The position numbers and the translations under genes are program-made. 64,000 bases of DNA from Thecamonas trahens ATCC 50062 (lineage: Eukaryota; Protista; Apusomonadida): the NCBI RefSeq assembly GCF_000142905.1, contig NW_013657670.1, forward strand, positions 397,498 through 461,497, in the 5' to 3' direction. Shown here in pieces: positions 34,297-64,000 of this stretch. The notes under the pieces were generated by a model, which was not told the DNA's origin, made no database searches, and saw only the letters and a list, made by a program, of their open reading frames with translations. The first letter of the stretch is position 1. Each line of letters starts with the position of its first letter.

Positions 34297-34890
34297 NNNN
34301 NNNNNNNNNNNNNNNNNNNNNNNNNNNNNNNNNNNNNNNNNNNNNNNNNNNNNNNNNNNNNNNNNNNNNNNNNNNNNNNNNNNNNNNNNNNNNNNNNNNN
34401 NNNNNNNNNNNNNNNNNNNNNNNNNNNNNNNNNNNNNNNNNNNNNNNNNNNNNNNNNNNNNNNNNNNNNNNNNNNNNNNNNNNNNNNNNNNNNNNNNNNN
34501 NNNNNNNNNNNNNNNNNNNNNNNNNNNNNNNNNNNNNNNNNNNNNNNNNNNNNNNNNNNNNNNNNNNNNNNNNNNNNNNNNNNNNNNNNNNNNNNNNNNN
34601 NNNNNNNNNNNNNNNNNNNNNNNNNNNNNNNNNNNNNNNNNNNNNNNNNNNNNNNNNNNNNNNNNNNNNNNNNNNNNNNNNNNNNNNNNNNNNNNNNNNN
34701 NNNNNNNNNNNNNNNNNNNNNNNNNNNNNNNNNNNNNNNNNNNNNNNNNNNNNNNNNNNNNNNNNNNNNNNNNNNNNNNNNNNNNNNNNNNNNNNNNNNN
34801 NNNNNNNNNNNNNNNNNNNNNNNNNNNNNNNNNNNNNNNNNNNNNNNNNNNNNNNNNNNNNNNNNNNNNNNNNNNNNNNNNNNNNNNNNN
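34297..34890. other. Assembly gap (594 N)
   Basis: Run of N flanked by G-rich low-complexity sequence. Confidence 1.
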
Positions 34891-55211: not shown

Positions 55212-58200
55212 ATGTTTGGGTCGTCGCCGCCACCGCCTTCGGCGTCTGCGGCCAACGCGTACGGGCCTGGTGCGGCGTCCTCGACCGGGTCGGCGGGGCT
55301 CGGGGTGGGTGGACCGACCGGCCCACAGGCCGGAATGCCGTCTGCGGCCAGCACCCATGTGTGCGACGCAGTGGCGAATAACTCGATGAACGATCTGCAG
55401 ACCTTCCTCCCGCTGGTCGACGTCAACGCGGCGTCGAGCGAGACCGGCTGCTCGCCGCTGCAAGTGGCTGCCTTCTACGACCGAACCAAGATGCTCCCGC
55501 TCCTGCTGCAGGCCGGGGCACGGGTCGACAAGGCGCATCCCAAGCTCGGGACGCCGCTGTACATTGCATGCAAGAAGGGCCACGATAAGTTTGCGCGGTC
55601 ACTGCTTGACGCCGGCGCGGATCCCGACGCCATCAACACCTCACAGGGCATGGCGCCGCTGCATGTGGCGTGCTCAATCGGCGCGCTCGAGGTTGTGCGG
55701 GCTCTTGTCGTTGCCGGCGCCAACGTGTCGATTACCGACACCAAGAACGGCGCGACGCCGCTGCACCGTGCGGTACATGGCGGCCACCGCACGGTCGCGC
55801 TGTATCTCATTCGCGAAGTCGGCGCCGACATCAACACCATGACTTGCTCGGGGCGAACACCGCTGCTCCTTGCAGCACGCTCTGCGCAGGACAAGGTCAT
55901 CGAGGCCCTGGCTGCTGCCGGCGCGTTCATCAATCTCGCGGACGACCAGGGCCAAACGCCGCTGCACATGGCGGCCAAGGGCTCGAAGAAGTCGACGCTC
56001 AAGCTCCTCCTCAAACTCGGCGCTGAGCCGGGCATGACCGACCATGCTGGCAAGACGCCGGCCGATTTCGCGACACAAAAGTCGTGGCGGAAGCTTTTGC
56101 GCAAGGCCGCGGCCAAGGCTTCGGCGGGCGGCAGCTCGTCCGTGCCTTCCGGCCCATCGTCTGCGCTCGCCTTTCGACGCAACCGAGCCACGTCGGGCGG
56201 TGCCGCATCATCGCTCAGCTCTTCACCGCCTACACAGTTTGGCATGCGGCCGCCGGCGTCGCGTACGTCGCCTATCTCAATGCTGCCGGACCCGCCGTCG
56301 AGTCGGCCGAGCGGGCGCGGGCGAGCGTCGACGAGCGAGCGCATCAACCGCCCGCCGACCAACTTTGGGCATTTCTCGACCACGCCCGGGCAGACATCGA
56401 CACCTGTCGACATTCCCGGCACAAGCTCGTCGCCGCCGCCGCCGACCTCGTCGTCGCTCCTGGCGCCGACTGACTACCCGGCATCGGCCTCGCCGGGCTC
56501 GGCCAACGGCATCATGTCACCCATTGAGCGGTTGCTCAAGTCGGCAGACTCGCCGTCGTCCGACCGAGCCGCCGCCGCCAGCAGCGGCGGCGGCAGCACC
56601 GGTGTCACATCACCGTCGACGCTTACTGCGCTCCGCCGCGAGGCGCTTCGTCCACCGGCTTCGGCCGCCGGCGCAAGCTCGGGCTCAGGCTCCAGCAAGA
56701 GCAAGTCGAAGAAGGACAGCAGCAAGAGCGACCAGGCGGCGTATGAAAAGGTTCACGGCTGGCTCAACTGCCGGCCGTCGGGAGGCAAGTGGGCCAAGCG
56801 GTGGTGTGTCCTCCGCGGCTCGATCTTCTCGATCTTTGAGTCTCGCGAGACCGACGACGGCTCGACCGCGCCGCGGCCAGTCAACTGCATCCGCACTATT
56901 GACACCGCCCACGCCCGAGTCGCCATTGTCACCAACGCGCCCGACACCTCGCGCCACTGCTTTGCCGTCACCTCGCACACCACTCGGGAAAAGCTGTACT
57001 TTGCGGCCATGTCCGAGAAGCGGCTGCGGACTTGGACGACGCTGCTCATCCAGGCCGGAGGGCGAAAGCACGCGCAAGCGTCGGGCTCGGAGCGGGCCAA
57101 GGCGGCGGTGCTCGCTCCGCAAGCGCTCTCGAACCTTTCAGCGCTCATGACTGGTGACGGAATCAAGGGCGGAAAGGCCTTTGGCTCGTCGCACTACACC
57201 TCGTCAATCCATGAGGCTGTCATCGACGGTGCACTCGATGTGTTCAAGGCCTTTGTCACAACCAACCCGTCAGCGGTCAAGAAGCGGAACGCCAAGGGTG
57301 AGCTACCGCTGTATCTCGCAGCCCGATATGGGCACGAAGCCATGGTTGATCTCATGCTCTCGGGCAGCCTCAAGACCAAGGTCGAGGTCGACGCCTTTAA
57401 CGGCCAGCTTGGCGAGCGGGGCACTGCGCTCCTTGCCGCTGCCTCCAAGGGCCACGACGACATTGTGCGCAAGCTTCTGGCAGCCGGCGCCCAGCCGGAT
57501 CTCTATCCACCGGGCGCGGTTGCCGACACGCCGACTATCGGCGCCGCCAAGTCGGGCGCTTTTGCTGTCCTCGACCTGCTTCTCGAAGCTGGTGCCGACC
57601 CGCTCCTGCCGGACCGGTCGGGCAAGACGCCGATGTACTGGGCGTCGCGCCGATCGCACGATGGCGCCGTCTCGCTCCTCCGCAAGCACGGGGCACTTGA
57701 GCTCAAGGTTACTCCGCCGCCATTCCAGTCTCCCGCCGCGGTCAAGGCCGCCCGCGCTGAACGAGCGCGACACAAGAACACGACCAACGCAACGCGCAAA
57801 CACGCTGCTGACGACTCCGTTCCCGAGCTCAACACCTCGAACCCCGAGGGTGGCGTCGGGAGCCCCAAGGCGTCCGGCTCGTCGGCCATGGCCACACCCA
57901 GGCGCGCCAAGCTGCCACAGGCGGCACTTGACGTTCACGACAAGTCCGGGGCGACGTCGACAAAGTCGCTGGCAGCCACTGGAAGCGCGGCCGACTTTGG
58001 AGACGGCGACGGGACCGGAAGCGACGACGACTCGCTCGCGCCACGGCCTGTTGCCGGCACCGGAAAGGAGATCGACGACGCCAACGAGCCGTCATCGATG
58101 CACATTTCCGACTCGTCCTCGCGGTTGGAGACCGGGACCGAGCCGCCGCCACCGCTCCCGCCGCTCCCGCGTACCGCCTCGGATGTGGCCGGAGACATTC

Positions 58201-61200
58201 TCGCCCACGTCGAGCGCCGCGACTCGTTTGAGTCGGACGAGTCAGCGGGCAAGGCCCGCGCTGCCGCGGTCCGCGCAGGCGGCGTTGTGCTCTCAGACGA
58301 GCTCTCGGACGAGGATGACGACGATGATGATGACGCCGAGGTTGTGACCGACGACGACGAAGACGACGACGACGACGACGACAACGGCGACGAGACACTG
58401 GTGAGCTCACGGGCGCGACGTCTCGCACGCGCCGGGGATGTTGATGAGACTGGCTCGGCCACGGGAACTGATATTGATCTCCTTGCGCAGCTCTCCACGC
58501 CTTCGCAGACGCCTGGACACTCCCGGACGGGAACGCGGACCGAGTCTGGATCGGGCTCTGAATCAGGCTCCGGCTCTGGCTCGGGCTCGAACTCGGACTC
58601 GGACTCTGAGCTCGATTCTGAGACTGGCTCGGGCTCATCCCTCTGCCGATCGGGCTCGTCGCTCCTTCAACCGCACGATCTTTTGGGCATGTCGCAAGTC
58701 TCAATTGCGGAACCACCACCGATGCTCGAGGTGTCTGACACAGACGACGATGGGTCGCGCTCGTCGACGCTGCTAGGCATGGAACCGACTGCGCAGCCAC
58801 CACTCGGCCTCTCGGCGTTTTCCGAGGGCGAGTCGACAGATGCTGACTCGATGATTGCGTCGGTCCCGAATCTGGTTACCGACGGCCTGACTGCCGAGTC
58901 GATGACCGAGGGCTCTCCACGGGTGCTCACACCCAAGTCGACAGTGTTTGTAGCGTCGCCGGTGGAGCGAAGCGACGGGCGGCGGATGCGGAGCTTGTTG
59001 GCGCAGCCGTTAGCTAGTCGGTCGACGAGCGCGCTGCCGTCGTCGCCAAGCGAGTCGTTCATTCCGACCGCCCTCGACAGGCTTGCCGACAAGATGCGCG
59101 GTGTGCTGCGGTCACGGGCCGAGGCTGAGGTTCTTCTTGCACCACGCAGCAAGCTCGCCAAGCTGACCGAGGCCGCACGCGCTTACTGCACCTCGGCTAG
59201 CCTTGACTCATCGGTCTCGATATTTCTCACTCGGCTGGAAAAGGCTGTGGGCGAGATGGATGAGCTTGAAGCCGAGCTGGCAGCTTCGCTCGGCGGTGAA
59301 AGCCGCGAGGCACTTGGCTTGCCGGAGCGAACGAGTCCGATGCGCGAGCTCAAGGGTAAGGAAGTGGTGGACGTGCTCGACTCGCCGCGGACCGGACCTC
59401 CATTCGACCCACACAAACTGCGGCGGTACCGGGTGCTCCGCGGCGAGGTGGCGAGTTTGATGGGCCGGCTGCAGCGGGAGCTCGGCGAGTGCGGCGAGTC
59501 CGAGGGGCCGGACGCGTTCAGCGCGGTGGCGCAGGCCCACACTGAGCTGGTCACCATGCACTCGGAGCTTGTGGCCAACTCGAGCTCGGGCATGGCGTCG
59601 CCGAGCTCGATGACAGCAGTGTCGGCGAACGAGATGCTTGACGCCCTGCTTGCGGCCGAGCGCGAGGCCGAGGCTGCGACAGCGCGACTGGCGCCTGCAT
59701 CGGCGCGGGTGGAAGCGCTGGTGGCGGAGCTGGGCGAAGCGTTGGAGGAGGAGGCGCAGATTCTTGCGGCGTCCCAGGCGCGGCTGGACGTCATGTTCAA
59801 GCACGCGGTCTCAGTCTCGTCGCGGTTTCTGCTCGACGACAAGCGGGCACGACTTGTGCGCGCGCGCGCCACCGTCGATACGCTCGAAAGCAGACTAGTG
59901 TCTGCGGATGAAGCCAAGGCCAAGGTTGAGGCACTGGTGAGCCAGGCCGAGGAGCTGAAGAAGACGATGAAGGCCAAGGCGCTGCTGCTTATCGACATGA
60001 AGCGCGAGATCATCCAGCGCGAAGACGAGTGGGATGTGGAAATCGCTGCACGGGCGCATGCTGAGCACGATGCACTTGAACAGGAGCTGACAGACCTCAA
60101 GTCGCAACGTGGGCTGCTCATTTCCGACATTGCGCGCGAGGCTGCGCACTCGGGCAACCTCCATGTCCTGCTCGAGGTACCAGAGCTTGCGTCGCCCGTT
60201 GCAGCGCATCGGCGCGAGCGCCGGCGGCGGAAGAAGGATGGCGGCAGCAGTGGCGGCAAGGCGGGCAACGCTGACGATGATCCGTTTGAAGTCAGCGACG
60301 ACGATAGCGGAGAGGGAGCAAAGCGGGCTTTTGACAAGTCGCACGAGTCGGACCGGGAGCTCGTGCTGCAGCTCCGCGCGTCGCTGCCTGGCGACAGCGG
60401 GGCAGCGGAAGCCGCTCCCGGTGGAGGCGACGGTGAGTCTGCCATGCCACGACTGAACCCCGCAGATGCGTTTGCGCAGTCGCGGGTCCTCCTCCCGCCC
60501 AACGGGGCGAGTCAAGTCTCCGGCTGCCGCCTGCTGCAGGCTGTGGAGAAAGAGTCGGGCGCACGGGTGGTGCTCAAGGTCCACCCAAGTCGCGAGTCTG
60601 CGGTGCACGAGCACCGGATGCTGAGCTCGATCACCTCGCCTTTGGTGGTCTCTACCCGCGGCCTCTACACTCACCAAGGCTACGCGTACGTGGTGATGGA
60701 CGAAGTGGTGGGTGTCGATCTTGTGGACGTACTCGACGGTTCGCTCAAGGTGTGGGAGGTACAGAGCCTGTTCTTGCAGATCTTGCAGGGTCTGGCGGTG
60801 CTCAACCGGGCCAAGCTCATGCATGGAGCGCTCGACCCGTGGCACATCCGGCTCGATGCGTCTGCGTCTCGACCGGTGCTTGTCTCTCTCCGGCACGCGG
60901 TGCCGATTTCAGTGTTTGCTGCGGCGCCGCTCGGCGAGAACACGCGGTCACCGGCGTACGTGGGGCCCGAGGTGGAGAGCGGGCGGGTGGTGCCAGGCTC
61001 GGACGTGTACTCGGTCGGCATCATGTTGTACCAGGCAGTGACGGGTCGACTGCCGTCGATGGCCCAGGTGCTGCACGGAGCGACCGGTGATGATGTCAAG
61101 GATGTTAAGCTCAAGTCGCTCCTCAACGGCATGCTGCAGCCAGACCCGGACAAGCGGGTCGGAGTGTTTGAGGCGCTCACCCACGAGTTCTTCTCGCACT

Positions 61201-62336
61201 CTGTGGCCGACACGCTCTTTGCTGACCGCAAGATCCTCGAGTCCGAGCAGAAAATCAACTTGCTGCGAAAGCACCTAGAGGCACTGCGGGCGCAGAACAA
61301 GCGCAACTTTGTGCGGCTCACAATCTCGCGCGAAGACATTGTAGTCTCTGTGGTGCGGGCGTTCTCGTCGCTGGCGCCGTCAGAAATGCTCTGCCCGCTC
61401 AAAGTGCACTTTGAAGGCGAGGCCGGCGTAGACGCGGGCGGGCTCACGGGCGACATGTACACCGAGTTCTTTATGCACGTATTTGAGCCACGGTACGCGC
61501 TCTTTGAGTGTGCAGAGGATTCGGGCGAGGCAACAGGCCAGGCGTACCTACCGTCGGCCAAGGCCGAGTCGCCCAAGTCGCTGTACGCTCTCGAGGTCAT
61601 GGGCCGTGTCCTCTGCAAGGCGCTGCTCGACGCGCGGTCTGTGTACCTTCCATTCCCGTCGTCGCTGTACAAGTACCTTCTCGGGCTCCCGGTCAACATC
61701 CGCGATCTCGAGGCTTACGACCGGACAGCAGCAGCCAACCTCCACAAGGTGCTCACCGAGCCGGACGTCTCGACATGGTGCCTCTCGTTCCCCAACGAGG
61801 ACGGCGACCTCATCGACGTGACGGCCGGCAACGCGGCGCAGTACGTTGAGTGGCACGTGAACGACAAGCTCCTCAAGTGCCGCGAGAAGCAACTGGCGGC
61901 ACTCAAGACCGGGTTCTTTGCGGTCGACTCGGTATGCGACATGCGGACGTTCCTCTCGGTCTTTAACGCGTCGGACCTCATGCTCGCACTCGGTGGCGAG
62001 CCGACCATCGACTCGCGGCTCATTGTGCGCGCGTTGACATTCCACCCCAAGTCGTGGAAGGTCTCGGGCCGGACGCCGCGGTACATCAAGCGGTTCCTCT
62101 CGGAGCTCTCGCTCCACGGGCTGCGGCAGTTCTTGCGGCTCACGACCTCGCTCTTCACCGTCCCGTATGGCGGCTTTAAGAAGAAGCGCATCGTTATCCA
62201 GCAGTCGAACCGGATCTTTGGCCACTCGTGCTCGTTTGCTCTCGAGCTTCCCGAGTTTGACCGGTACGAGGACTTGCGCAAGTCGCTCCTGCAGGCGCTA
62301 GCCCAGGTCGAGGCTGCCGGGTTCTCTGATCGGTAA
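55212..62336 (+). CDS. Ankyrin-PH-ankyrin-coiled coil-pseudokinase-HECT E3 ubiquitin ligase (2374 aa)
   Basis: TPLH-type ankyrin repeats. PH domain (GWL..KWAKRWCVL..LYFAA..W). Kinase fold (VVLK, E, YVGPE, SDVYSVG, PDKR). HECT domain (VHFEGEAGVDAGGL, LYKYLLG, FLRLTT, GHSCSFALELP). Confidence 0.92.
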   Translation: MFGSSPPPPSASAANAYGPGAASSTGSAGLGVGGPTGPQAGMPSAASTHVCDAVANNSMNDLQTFLPLVDVNAASSETGCSPLQVAAFYDRTKMLPLLLQAGARVDKAHPKLGTPLYIACKKGHDKFARSLLDAGADPDAINTSQGMAPLHVACSIGALEVVRALVVAGANVSITDTKNGATPLHRAVHGGHRTVALYLIREVGADINTMTCSGRTPLLLAARSAQDKVIEALAAAGAFINLADDQGQTPLHMAAKGSKKSTLKLLLKLGAEPGMTDHAGKTPADFATQKSWRKLLRKAAAKASAGGSSSVPSGPSSALAFRRNRATSGGAASSLSSSPPTQFGMRPPASRTSPISMLPDPPSSRPSGRGRASTSERINRPPTNFGHFSTTPGQTSTPVDIPGTSSSPPPPTSSSLLAPTDYPASASPGSANGIMSPIERLLKSADSPSSDRAAAASSGGGSTGVTSPSTLTALRREALRPPASAAGASSGSGSSKSKSKKDSSKSDQAAYEKVHGWLNCRPSGGKWAKRWCVLRGSIFSIFESRETDDGSTAPRPVNCIRTIDTAHARVAIVTNAPDTSRHCFAVTSHTTREKLYFAAMSEKRLRTWTTLLIQAGGRKHAQASGSERAKAAVLAPQALSNLSALMTGDGIKGGKAFGSSHYTSSIHEAVIDGALDVFKAFVTTNPSAVKKRNAKGELPLYLAARYGHEAMVDLMLSGSLKTKVEVDAFNGQLGERGTALLAAASKGHDDIVRKLLAAGAQPDLYPPGAVADTPTIGAAKSGAFAVLDLLLEAGADPLLPDRSGKTPMYWASRRSHDGAVSLLRKHGALELKVTPPPFQSPAAVKAARAERARHKNTTNATRKHAADDSVPELNTSNPEGGVGSPKASGSSAMATPRRAKLPQAALDVHDKSGATSTKSLAATGSAADFGDGDGTGSDDDSLAPRPVAGTGKEIDDANEPSSMHISDSSSRLETGTEPPPPLPPLPRTASDVAGDILAHVERRDSFESDESAGKARAAAVRAGGVVLSDELSDEDDDDDDDAEVVTDDDEDDDDDDDNGDETLVSSRARRLARAGDVDETGSATGTDIDLLAQLSTPSQTPGHSRTGTRTESGSGSESGSGSGSGSNSDSDSELDSETGSGSSLCRSGSSLLQPHDLLGMSQVSIAEPPPMLEVSDTDDDGSRSSTLLGMEPTAQPPLGLSAFSEGESTDADSMIASVPNLVTDGLTAESMTEGSPRVLTPKSTVFVASPVERSDGRRMRSLLAQPLASRSTSALPSSPSESFIPTALDRLADKMRGVLRSRAEAEVLLAPRSKLAKLTEAARAYCTSASLDSSVSIFLTRLEKAVGEMDELEAELAASLGGESREALGLPERTSPMRELKGKEVVDVLDSPRTGPPFDPHKLRRYRVLRGEVASLMGRLQRELGECGESEGPDAFSAVAQAHTELVTMHSELVANSSSGMASPSSMTAVSANEMLDALLAAEREAEAATARLAPASARVEALVAELGEALEEEAQILAASQARLDVMFKHAVSVSSRFLLDDKRARLVRARATVDTLESRLVSADEAKAKVEALVSQAEELKKTMKAKALLLIDMKREIIQREDEWDVEIAARAHAEHDALEQELTDLKSQRGLLISDIAREAAHSGNLHVLLEVPELASPVAAHRRERRRRKKDGGSSGGKAGNADDDPFEVSDDDSGEGAKRAFDKSHESDRELVLQLRASLPGDSGAAEAAPGGGDGESAMPRLNPADAFAQSRVLLPPNGASQVSGCRLLQAVEKESGARVVLKVHPSRESAVHEHRMLSSITSPLVVSTRGLYTHQGYAYVVMDEVVGVDLVDVLDGSLKVWEVQSLFLQILQGLAVLNRAKLMHGALDPWHIRLDASASRPVLVSLRHAVPISVFAAAPLGENTRSPAYVGPEVESGRVVPGSDVYSVGIMLYQAVTGRLPSMAQVLHGATGDDVKDVKLKSLLNGMLQPDPDKRVGVFEALTHEFFSHSVADTLFADRKILESEQKINLLRKHLEALRAQNKRNFVRLTISREDIVVSVVRAFSSLAPSEMLCPLKVHFEGEAGVDAGGLTGDMYTEFFMHVFEPRYALFECAEDSGEATGQAYLPSAKAESPKSLYALEVMGRVLCKALLDARSVYLPFPSSLYKYLLGLPVNIRDLEAYDRTAAANLHKVLTEPDVSTWCLSFPNEDGDLIDVTAGNAAQYVEWHVNDKLLKCREKQLAALKTGFFAVDSVCDMRTFLSVFNASDLMLALGGEPTIDSRLIVRALTFHPKSWKVSGRTPRYIKRFLSELSLHGLRQFLRLTTSLFTVPYGGFKKKRIVIQQSNRIFGHSCSFALELPEFDRYEDLRKSLLQALAQVEAAGFSDR

Positions 62337-62385
62337 AAAGTGAAGGTTGTTGTGCAGTGTAGTGCGAGGCGTTCACTGGGCCGGG

Positions 62386-64000
62386 CTACAGGTGGAAGGG
62401 CCGGTTGCGGTAGTCAGGCGCAGCGTGTGCCGGACGGCGGCCTGCAGCGGCCTGCGGCGGCGGGGCAAAGTTGGCCTGATTGGTGGTCTGGTACGGCGAG
62501 TGCGCGGCGACGGGATGAGCAAGGAAGTTGCCCTCGGAGGAGGCCAGGGCAGAAGCGGCCGGGCGGGAGGCTGCGGAGGAGGTGGCCCAGGGCGGGGCCG
62601 GGCCTGAGGAGCCGTACGGCTTGGGCTTGGGCTTGAACCCGGAGCGGAGATCCTCCGGGAGAAGGTTGACGTCGTTGGCATCCTTGAGGACGCCCTTGGG
62701 CAGGTAGCCGAGGAGCTTGGAGGCGTGCTCCTTGATGAGGCGCTGGCGCTCCTCCTCGATGATGGCGGCGCGATAGGCCTCGAACTCGCGCTCCTGGGCG
62801 CGGCGGTCGTGCTCTGCAGAGAGCTCGGCCTCGTAAGCTTCGCGGCGCTGGCGAATGAGCTCGTCGACTTCGCGGCGATGCTGGATCTGGCGCATGCGGC
62901 GCTTGTTGGCGGCCATCTGCTCGAGCTTCTCGTCCTGGGCAAACTTCTCGAGCATGGCAGCGCGGAAGGCCTCCTCCTCGTCGCGGCGGGCCTGCGCTCT
63001 GCGGGCCTTGGCCTCCATCTGCTCCTTGTACGACGCCTGCATCTCGATGCGCTGGCGGATGCGCTTTTCCATCTCGGCGCGCTCGCGGGCACGGGCAGCA
63101 GCCTCCTGCTCCTCCCAATGGAGCTCCTGGCGGAGGTCTTCGAGCTCGCGGCGCGAGGCCTCCTGCTGGGCAATGGCGGCAGCCTGCTGCTCACGGACAC
63201 GCTCGCGGAGGGCGTCCTTGGCGCGACGGGTGGCCTCGAAGCGCGCCTTGCGTTCCTCTTGTTGCTTGACATATGCGGCGATTTCGACGTTCTCGGCCTC
63301 GATGCGTGCACGCTCGGCGGTCTTGATGGCCTCGCGCTGGCGCATAAACTCGTCGATGTACTCGCGGGTCTCGCGCTGCTTCTCCAGTCGCTCGCGGGCG
63401 GAAGCGTCGTCTTCGGCCTGGATCTTGGCGACGATCTCGTCGATCATGGCCTTCTCACGGAGGAACTCCTCATAGGCAGCCTCCTTGGCAGCCTCCTTGG
63501 CTTCGAGCTGCTCCTGCAGTGACTCGCGGTAGGCGGTGGCCTTGGCAGCGTTGGCGGCCATGCGGGCGTCCTCGTCGACAAAGGCGCGCTGCCACTCTTC
63601 CAGCAGCTGGCGGTCACGGGCTTGCTCCTCGGCGACCCGCTGCTGGAACATGAGCTCCTTCTCGGCCATCTGCGCCGCGCGCTCCTTGGTCAGATACGCG
63701 GCCTTGAGCCGCGACTGCAGCTCGCGGAGCTCCGCCGAGTCCTCGCGGATGAGCTGGCGGAGCTTGGCGTCTCTCAGTGCGTCGGCCTTGCGGCGCTCGA
63801 CCTCGTTGGCGAGCGCAACTTCTTCGGCACGTCGGCGAGCGGCGGCTTCACGAGCTGCACCAGTCCGCTCGACCTCGGCAGCCATCTGAGCCTCCTGCTG
63901 AGCCGCGCGCATCTCACGCATCCTCCGCTTGGCTTGGACACGATCGTTGGAGACATGGGCGCCAAACTCAATCCTGTCCGTTGCCAGATGAGAGTGCAGC
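62386..64000 (-). CDS. MNS1: Meiosis-specific nuclear structural protein 1 (ciliary microtubule inner protein), 5'-truncated
   Basis: LRQLIREDSAELRELQSRLKAAY..ERAAQ, MLEKFAQDEKLEQM..KRRM..HRR, IIEEERQRLIKEHA.KLLGYLPKGV. The frame remains open to the window edge. Confidence 0.92.
   Translation of the reverse strand, partial: LHSHLATDRIEFGAHVSNDRVQAKRRMREMRAAQQEAQMAAEVERTGAAREAAARRRAEEVALANEVERRKADALRDAKLRQLIREDSAELRELQSRLKAAYLTKERAAQMAEKELMFQQRVAEEQARDRQLLEEWQRAFVDEDARMAANAAKATAYRESLQEQLEAKEAAKEAAYEEFLREKAMIDEIVAKIQAEDDASARERLEKQRETREYIDEFMRQREAIKTAERARIEAENVEIAAYVKQQEERKARFEATRRAKDALRERVREQQAAAIAQQEASRRELEDLRQELHWEEQEAAARARERAEMEKRIRQRIEMQASYKEQMEAKARRAQARRDEEEAFRAAMLEKFAQDEKLEQMAANKRRMRQIQHRREVDELIRQRREAYEAELSAEHDRRAQEREFEAYRAAIIEEERQRLIKEHASKLLGYLPKGVLKDANDVNLLPEDLRSGFKPKPKPYGSSGPAPPWATSSAASRPAASALASSEGNFLAHPVAAHSPYQTTNQANFAPPPQAAAGRRPAHAAPDYRNRPFHL

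Follow-up and report, generated by a model that had tools for sequence, protein, structure and literature searches.

A 64-kb window of the Thecamonas trahens ATCC 50062 genome (64,000 nucleotides of contig NW_013657670.1; all positions below are window coordinates) was analysed, in which an open reading frame (ORF) of 2374 codons encodes a large HECT-type ubiquitin ligase. In the predicted protein, two blocks of ankyrin (ANK) repeats that flank a PH domain are followed by a coiled coil, a predicted pseudokinase and, directly after it, a C-terminal HECT domain. The parts of the gene were delimited by a Pfam scan (matches are reported where above the curated cut-offs, unless stated otherwise), a crude heptad script and AlphaFold2 (AF2) models, and are as follows:

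55212-62336, + strand: whole ORF, 2374 codons plus stop; a single exon as far as can be read from the DNA
55377-56096, + strand: ankyrin block 1, residues about 56-295, six to seven repeats (Pfam Ank_2, Ank, Ank_4, Ank_3 and Ank_5)
56097-56753, + strand: linker rich in Ser, Pro, Ala and Gly, probably disordered, residues 296-514 (Pro, Gly and Ser together 47%; without a Pfam family)
56754-57053, + strand: PH domain, residues 515-614 (Pfam PH, 39 bits against a cut-off of 25)
57282-57806, + strand: ankyrin block 2, residues about 691-865, four to five repeats (Pfam Ank; Ank_KRIT1 at residues 738-813)
57807-59195, + strand: acidic linker rich in Asp and Ser, residues 866-1328 (Asp and Glu together 18%, Ser 16%; without a Pfam family)
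59196-60152, + strand: coiled-coil-type helical region, residues 1329-1647 (heptad script; AF2 helices)
60537-61208, + strand: predicted pseudokinase domain with a CAMK-like fold, residues 1776-1999 (Pfam Pkinase; PDB matches; AF2)
60819-60845, + strand: degenerate catalytic loop MHGALDPWH (Ala for the HRD Asp, Asp for the loop Lys, His for the Asn)
60882-60890, + strand: VSL instead of DFG (Ser for the Mg-binding Asp)
61209-61331, + strand: basic helical linker between kinase and HECT, residues 2000-2040 (best conserved segment with the orthologue; a helix in the AF2 model)
61332-62333, + strand: HECT domain, N-lobe and C-lobe, residues 2041-2374 (Pfam HECT; HUWE1 match; Foldseek)
62229-62231, + strand: codon of the catalytic Cys2340 in GHSC (alignment to the HUWE1 Cys)

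This order of domains had been put forward in a first-pass annotation of the window and is borne out by the Pfam scan, the heptad script and AF2. The uninterrupted 2374-aa ORF that the annotation described is present on the forward strand with coding bias throughout, its coordinates were correct to within a few tens of bases, and both of the domain profiles proposed as a check, Pkinase and HECT, were matched above their cut-offs. Its reading of the HECT domain as one that retains the catalytic Cys (GHSC) and the Phe at position −4 likewise held on alignment to HUWE1 and inspection of the GFSDR* end.

The frame opens just 4 codons upstream of the first ATG (open frame of 2378 aa), and its GC content at third codon positions stays between 0.66 and 0.90 in all 100-codon blocks, the low-complexity linkers included; the GC content of the 838-base spacer upstream is 55%. 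Judged by base composition, a sense run of 2374 codons cannot be attained by chance. On a marine (Tara) contig (L011), an orthologue 62-64% identical to this protein shows an unbroken kinase-HECT frame that runs on without a stop as far as the contig reaches on its 5′ side, and in the transcriptome-derived relatives from Papus, Pharyngomonas and Gloeochaete kinase and HECT lie on one transcript. Because the ORF and its codon bias concur with this unbroken frame and with these single transcripts, the interval 55212-62336 is, as far as DNA can tell, one real gene.

The HECT domain was matched by Pfam over residues 2086-2367 (119 bits), and its closest solved relatives by sequence are HUWE1 (1e-25) and then Tom1, with HACE1 weaker (1.3e-11). 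Cys2340 in the GHSC motif aligns with the active-site Cys of HUWE1, and a Cys is found in 51 of the 51 members of the kinase-HECT family (described below) that have a residue in that column; the Phe at −4 from the C-terminus (GFSDR*) recurs in 45 of 57 members. Modelling of residues 1740-2374 by AF2 with the family alignment gave a mean predicted local distance difference test score (pLDDT) of 87.8 and a predicted template modelling score (pTM) of 0.62, and the top Foldseek match of the model was 6xz1, a HUWE1 HECT~ubiquitin conjugate (template modelling score of 0.79 on the target). By alignment and predicted fold, then, the domain is shown to keep everything readable at these levels for thioester catalysis, and it appears competent. 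Across the genome about 22 separate HECT loci (24 matches) were found, many of them within open frames of great length (up to 2991 aa), in agreement with the independent HECT expansion reported for Thecamonas trahens (Grau-Bove et al. 2013; PMC3673628).

The kinase fold upstream of it was matched by Pfam Pkinase over residues 1777-1994 (59 bits), with AMPK and CDPK as its best PDB matches and a pLDDT of about 80-93 in AF2. Where active kinases read HRDLKPxN, this protein has MHGALDPWH. Three of the four key catalytic residues by which a kinase was counted as competent (HRD Asp, loop Asn and DFG Asp) are gone, and the fourth, the β3 Lys, is kept, as is the αC Glu. The three losses are the same in the orthologues P0005 and P0155. 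The domain is thus predicted to be catalytically dead, that is, a pseudokinase, a point that the first-pass annotation of this gene had not raised. Identity to the orthologue (P0155) is 60-67% in the kinase lobes, 71% in the linker and 56-67% in the HECT lobes, compared with 26% just upstream of the kinase. Because these values for the dead kinase and the linker match or exceed those for HECT, against 26% upstream, both segments are, by this comparison, held under constraint.

Towards the N-terminus, the Ank-family Pfam scores over the two blocks ranged from 105 to 182 bits. The PH domain found weak PDB matches in the PH domains of myosin X and SKAP55, and its β1-β2 region (GWLNCRPSGGKWAKRWCVL) carries only in part, as read by eye, the basic K-Xn-(K/R)-X-R signature that is usual for phosphoinositide-binding PH domains. 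The crude heptad script flagged 43% of residues 1290-1740, compared with 10% (standard deviation 8%) in shuffled sequences, and single-sequence AF2 produced unbroken helices at residues 1469-1532 and 1535-1647 (pLDDT of about 75-93). No Pfam family was matched by the three linkers or by the helical, coiled-coil region.

To place the kinase-HECT unit, residues 1740-2374 were used as query in a profile-free search of 1.84 billion representatives, after which the best 150 clusters were examined by local phmmer. The search returned 86 clusters below 1e-30; in many of them one HMMER stretch ran from about position 50 to about position 630 of the query and so covered kinase plus HECT, and both domains were found in 92 of the best 150 clusters. 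The spacer from the end of the kinase to the extended start of HECT is 42 aa in this protein and 38-54 aa in most of the 92 members. Named members come from Gloeochaete (a glaucophyte), Tieghemostelium (a dictyostelid, with the order RCC1-kinase-HECT), Paraphysomonas (a chrysophyte), Papus and Phytomonas (kinetoplastids), and Pharyngomonas and Naegleria lovaniensis (heteroloboseans; P0022 in the latter), the remaining ones being metagenomic. The unit was therefore found in at least five eukaryotic supergroups, and the suggestion of the first-pass annotation that the system may be lineage-specific is not supported for the kinase-HECT unit.

A close paralogue with both domains was not found in the Thecamonas genome itself, and a word-index search of long proteins (1300-4150 aa; 8000 candidates scored) returned TOM1-type HECTs only and no full-length orthologue. 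A second gene of the kinase-HECT family is nevertheless present in the same genome (G000:C3:467715-470945; L020:1216-4446, + strand) and encodes 1076 aa. Its kinase is more degenerate still: the Pfam Pkinase score is 21 bits (below the cut-off) and that of a hidden Markov model (HMM) of the family kinase 60 bits, the β3 Lys is replaced by Arg, the HRD Asp is absent and the DF is retained, while its HECT domain (92 bits) still has its Cys (AAHTC) and a Phe at −4. A metagenomic protein of 1957 aa (P0127) was rejected as a close relative of the kinase (109 bits), since it is an unrelated protein with four tandem kinase domains whose scores add up; it also has a STAND-type ATPase region and, at its C-terminus, an FHA domain.

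N-terminal families among 37 long members comprised Ank in 7, TPR in 6, zf-RanBP in 3, filamin in 2, LRR in 2, RCC1 in 1 and Kelch in 1. By this tally, targeting modules at the N-terminus are exchanged freely across the family, Ank and TPR being the commonest. Members bearing ANK are spread over several separate clades, so ANK was probably gained independently within the family. ANK-kinase-HECT proteins were also seen in other, unrelated clades (P0031 of 1960 aa, from a Logan contig and with Asn for the HRD Asp, as well as P0090, P0039 and P0129), and ANK is for this reason regarded as a recurrent partner of the kinase-HECT unit. PH did not occur among the first 25 of the 40 families listed for the long members, and neither the PH domain nor the coiled coil of this protein matched any family member in phmmer comparisons. 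The N-terminal arrangement ANK-PH-ANK-coiled coil was not seen in other kinase-HECT members, and it is only this part that appears lineage-specific. Of the architecture that the earlier annotation had singled out as unusual, the full order ANK-PH-ANK-coiled coil-kinase-HECT was thus not seen elsewhere, but its kinase-HECT core is widespread.

A quick IQ-TREE search was run on 107 HECT domains, 84 of them kinase-bearing and 23 without a detectable kinase. Twenty-one of the latter formed one clade (99% support), which contains the HUWE1/Tom1-type HECTs, the paralogues from the Thecamonas genome and other kinase-less matches; the other side of the tree holds every one of the 84 kinase-bearing HECTs and, in addition, the last two sequences without a detectable kinase. 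The kinase label changes 2 times on this tree, compared with a mean of 20.9 when the labels are shuffled. The topology fits a single old fusion of kinase and HECT, with deep nodes that are weak. Because its kinase position, its linker length and the grouping of its HECT domain with the kinase-bearing HECTs all concur, the Thecamonas protein is placed by these features in the same family as TKUL, a kinase-HECT ligase of Leishmania. Within the tree it pairs with its marine orthologue (support of 100), and the pair adjoins four metagenomic members (support of 88): P0008, P0009 and P0013, which carry zf-RanBP, and P0019, an N-terminal fragment. Kinase motifs can be read in three of these neighbours, and in all three they are partly degenerate as well.

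Among 56 complete modules, the β3 Lys is present in 48, the HRD Asp in 41, the Asn in 43 and the DFG Asp in 42. Since about three-quarters of these modules keep the catalytic residues, most family members are probably active kinases; in about one-quarter the residues are lost, both Thecamonas copies being among them. The degenerate members are scattered over the tree (among them the clade of this protein; P0024, in an otherwise intact clade; P0031 plus P0039; P0037; and two clades with very low kinase scores); catalysis has therefore been lost several times. The Gly-rich loop of the family lacks the usual GxGxxG even where all catalytic residues are kept, which may be a family trait. The best PDB match of the family profile, at 279 bits and far above other kinases, is 9gmp_A, a 'Map kinase kinase-like protein'; it matches the Papus member at 2e-58, and the kinase domains of the kinetoplastid members match 9GMP strongly. 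We infer that 9GMP is the kinase domain of TKUL, which the entry name does not state.

TKUL itself, the characterization of which is reportedly owed to Fokkens et al. (Mol Cell 2025; PMID 40997810), is HECT12 (LmxM.34.4000) of L. mexicana, orthologous to LmjF35.4000 of L. major. Two recent texts that cite this work describe it as a dual kinase and ligase, both activities of which matter in amastigotes; its ligase activity is reported to require autophosphorylation and to be blocked allosterically when a kinase inhibitor is applied (bioRxiv 10.64898/2026.05.08.723729; PMC13196369). The L. major protein had been listed as a unique kinase that combines three TPR motifs with a HECT domain (Parsons et al. 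2005; PMC1266030), and HECTs with 'unusual protein kinase domains' had been recorded in Naegleria and Ectocarpus (Grau-Bove et al. 2013; PMC3673628). The statement of the first-pass annotation that no characterized HECT family carries a kinase domain is thus overtaken, the combination being known since 2005 in Leishmania and 2013 in Naegleria and Ectocarpus, and TKUL having reportedly been characterized in 2025. The kinase-HECT core is hence of an already known and characterized kind, and what is new here is the pseudokinase state and the N-terminus.

Like the Thecamonas protein, TKUL has its kinase fold directly before the C-terminal HECT with a short conserved linker between them, belongs to the same family by the HECT tree and is reported to use the kinase fold as an allosteric regulator of the ligase. 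It differs in that its kinase is described as active and autophosphorylating, whereas here the HRD Asp, Asn and DFG Asp are lost; in that its N-terminus is TPR, whereas here it is ANK-PH-ANK-coiled coil (no TPR family in the Pfam scan); and in its position in another subclade of the HECT tree, the Thecamonas protein standing beside the zf-RanBP members. The kinase-bearing HECTs of Naegleria and Ectocarpus in Grau-Bove et al. ('GL-Bikonta', class IV) are likewise protist HECTs, as yet uncharacterized, and N. lovaniensis P0022 is a member of the family found here. By sequence and fold, the nearest kinase-less HECT of this protein is HUWE1/TOM1 (class VI), not G2E3. The HUWE1/Tom1 HECT is the best match in both respects, yet HECTs of that type lack a kinase fold and form a separate, well supported clade. 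In HACE1 and HECTD1, too, the recognition module of the ligase consists of ankyrin repeats, but here ANK and HECT are separated by a PH domain, a linker of 460 residues, a coiled coil and a kinase fold; given these insertions and a HACE1 HECT that matches less well than that of HUWE1, it does not belong to the HACE1/HECTD1-type ankyrin-HECT ligases.

Downstream of the gene, a convergent ORF of 511 aa lies at 62386-63921 on the − strand, its stop being about 50 bases from that of the HECT gene. A contig from an independent public assembly in ENA (L013; ERZ505273, NODE_9902) is 99.7% identical over 1355 bases to 61649-63003, a stretch that takes in the 3′ part of the HECT gene together with the neighbouring gene; that ENA sample therefore contains this organism or one very close to it. 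The counterpart of the convergent ORF on this contig has a TPH (PF13868) match. Elsewhere in the window, an assembly gap of 594 N at 34297-34890 explains why the GC content of the 34-36 kb block seems to fall to 45%.

As a whole, these observations are best explained, and on balance we consider it likely, by a real gene for a ligase of the kinase-HECT family in which a dead kinase is kept as the controller of HECT. The kinase fold would no longer phosphorylate and would be retained as a non-enzymatic, allosteric module acting on the adjoining HECT domain. Because a dead kinase cannot autophosphorylate, the switch would have to be set otherwise than in TKUL as reported: by phosphorylation in trans, by a bound partner or nucleotide, or by a conformation that is permanently 'on'. 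The two ankyrin blocks and the PH domain may govern the choice of substrates and the cellular location, and the coiled coil may permit oligomerization of the ligase. That a kinase-fold module gates the ligase, as the first-pass annotation had surmised, would match by analogy what is reported for TKUL.

Several points weigh against this interpretation. Modelling of the kinase-HECT pair, which the same annotation had put forward, yielded confident folds, but at a pTM of only 0.62 a fixed contact between the two domains is not established. The kinase domain alone appears no closer in sequence to family kinases (35-55 bits) than to ordinary kinases encoded in the same genome (36-49 bits), and since it does not discriminate between them, the protein is assigned to the family by position, linker and HECT phylogeny. 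The HECT tree behind that phylogeny comes from a quick search and is weak at its deep nodes, the gene is known here from DNA sequence alone, and the TKUL mechanism is taken from two citing papers only.

Among other explanations, we think it unlikely, though worth weighing, that the pseudokinase is mainly a docking surface, bringing substrates or partners to HECT instead of switching it allosterically. Many pseudokinases are scaffolds, the N-terminal recognition domains vary freely across the family while the kinase stays, and a pTM as modest as this does not prove that kinase and HECT share a fixed interface; however, the linker is the best conserved segment (71%) and of near-constant length across the family, which argues for mechanical coupling, and TKUL is reported to use its kinase as an allosteric regulator. 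The docking and the allosteric roles are compatible and do not exclude each other. It is improbable that the fold has stayed enzymatically active, using catalytic residues that are unusual or have moved, and that the protein works like TKUL by autophosphorylation: the β3 Lys and αC Glu are retained, the Gly-rich loop is atypical already in members with all catalytic residues, and some predicted pseudokinases have proved active, but the catalytic-loop Asn has gone together with the Asp of both HRD and DFG, these losses are fixed in the orthologue, and the aligned loops show no acidic residue that would evidently compensate. That two genes were fused by an accident of assembly or frame, or that the ORF is a decaying pseudogene with a non-working HECT, is hardly credible, since the HECT and Pkinase Pfam scores are low for those families but stand against 2374 sense codons of uniform coding bias, an identical kinase-HECT junction in the orthologue, the independent ENA contig with its 99.7% identity over the 3′ end, and a catalytic Cys, a Phe at −4 and a confident HECT fold that are all present.

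The interpretation of the dead kinase as a retained controller of HECT can be extended to the family as a whole, although more tentatively than for the single gene and with less confidence than doubt. The family kinase fold may be first of all a conformational switch for HECT in which catalysis is dispensable, so that pseudokinases arose independently in Thecamonas and several other lineages, with the switch set by a partner, a nucleotide, phosphorylation in trans or oligomerization through the coiled coil.

The fusion of a kinase fold to HECT has recently become a studied regulatory principle through Leishmania TKUL. The kinase-HECT unit is no kinetoplastid oddity but a large family over at least five eukaryotic supergroups, and in about a quarter of its complete members the catalytic residues are lost while the kinase stays constrained. 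Such dead-kinase members are natural experiments that can separate the structural from the enzymatic role of the kinase in the control of HECT. If the switch does operate without catalysis, these variants would show that a kinase fold can control a HECT ligase without phosphotransfer.

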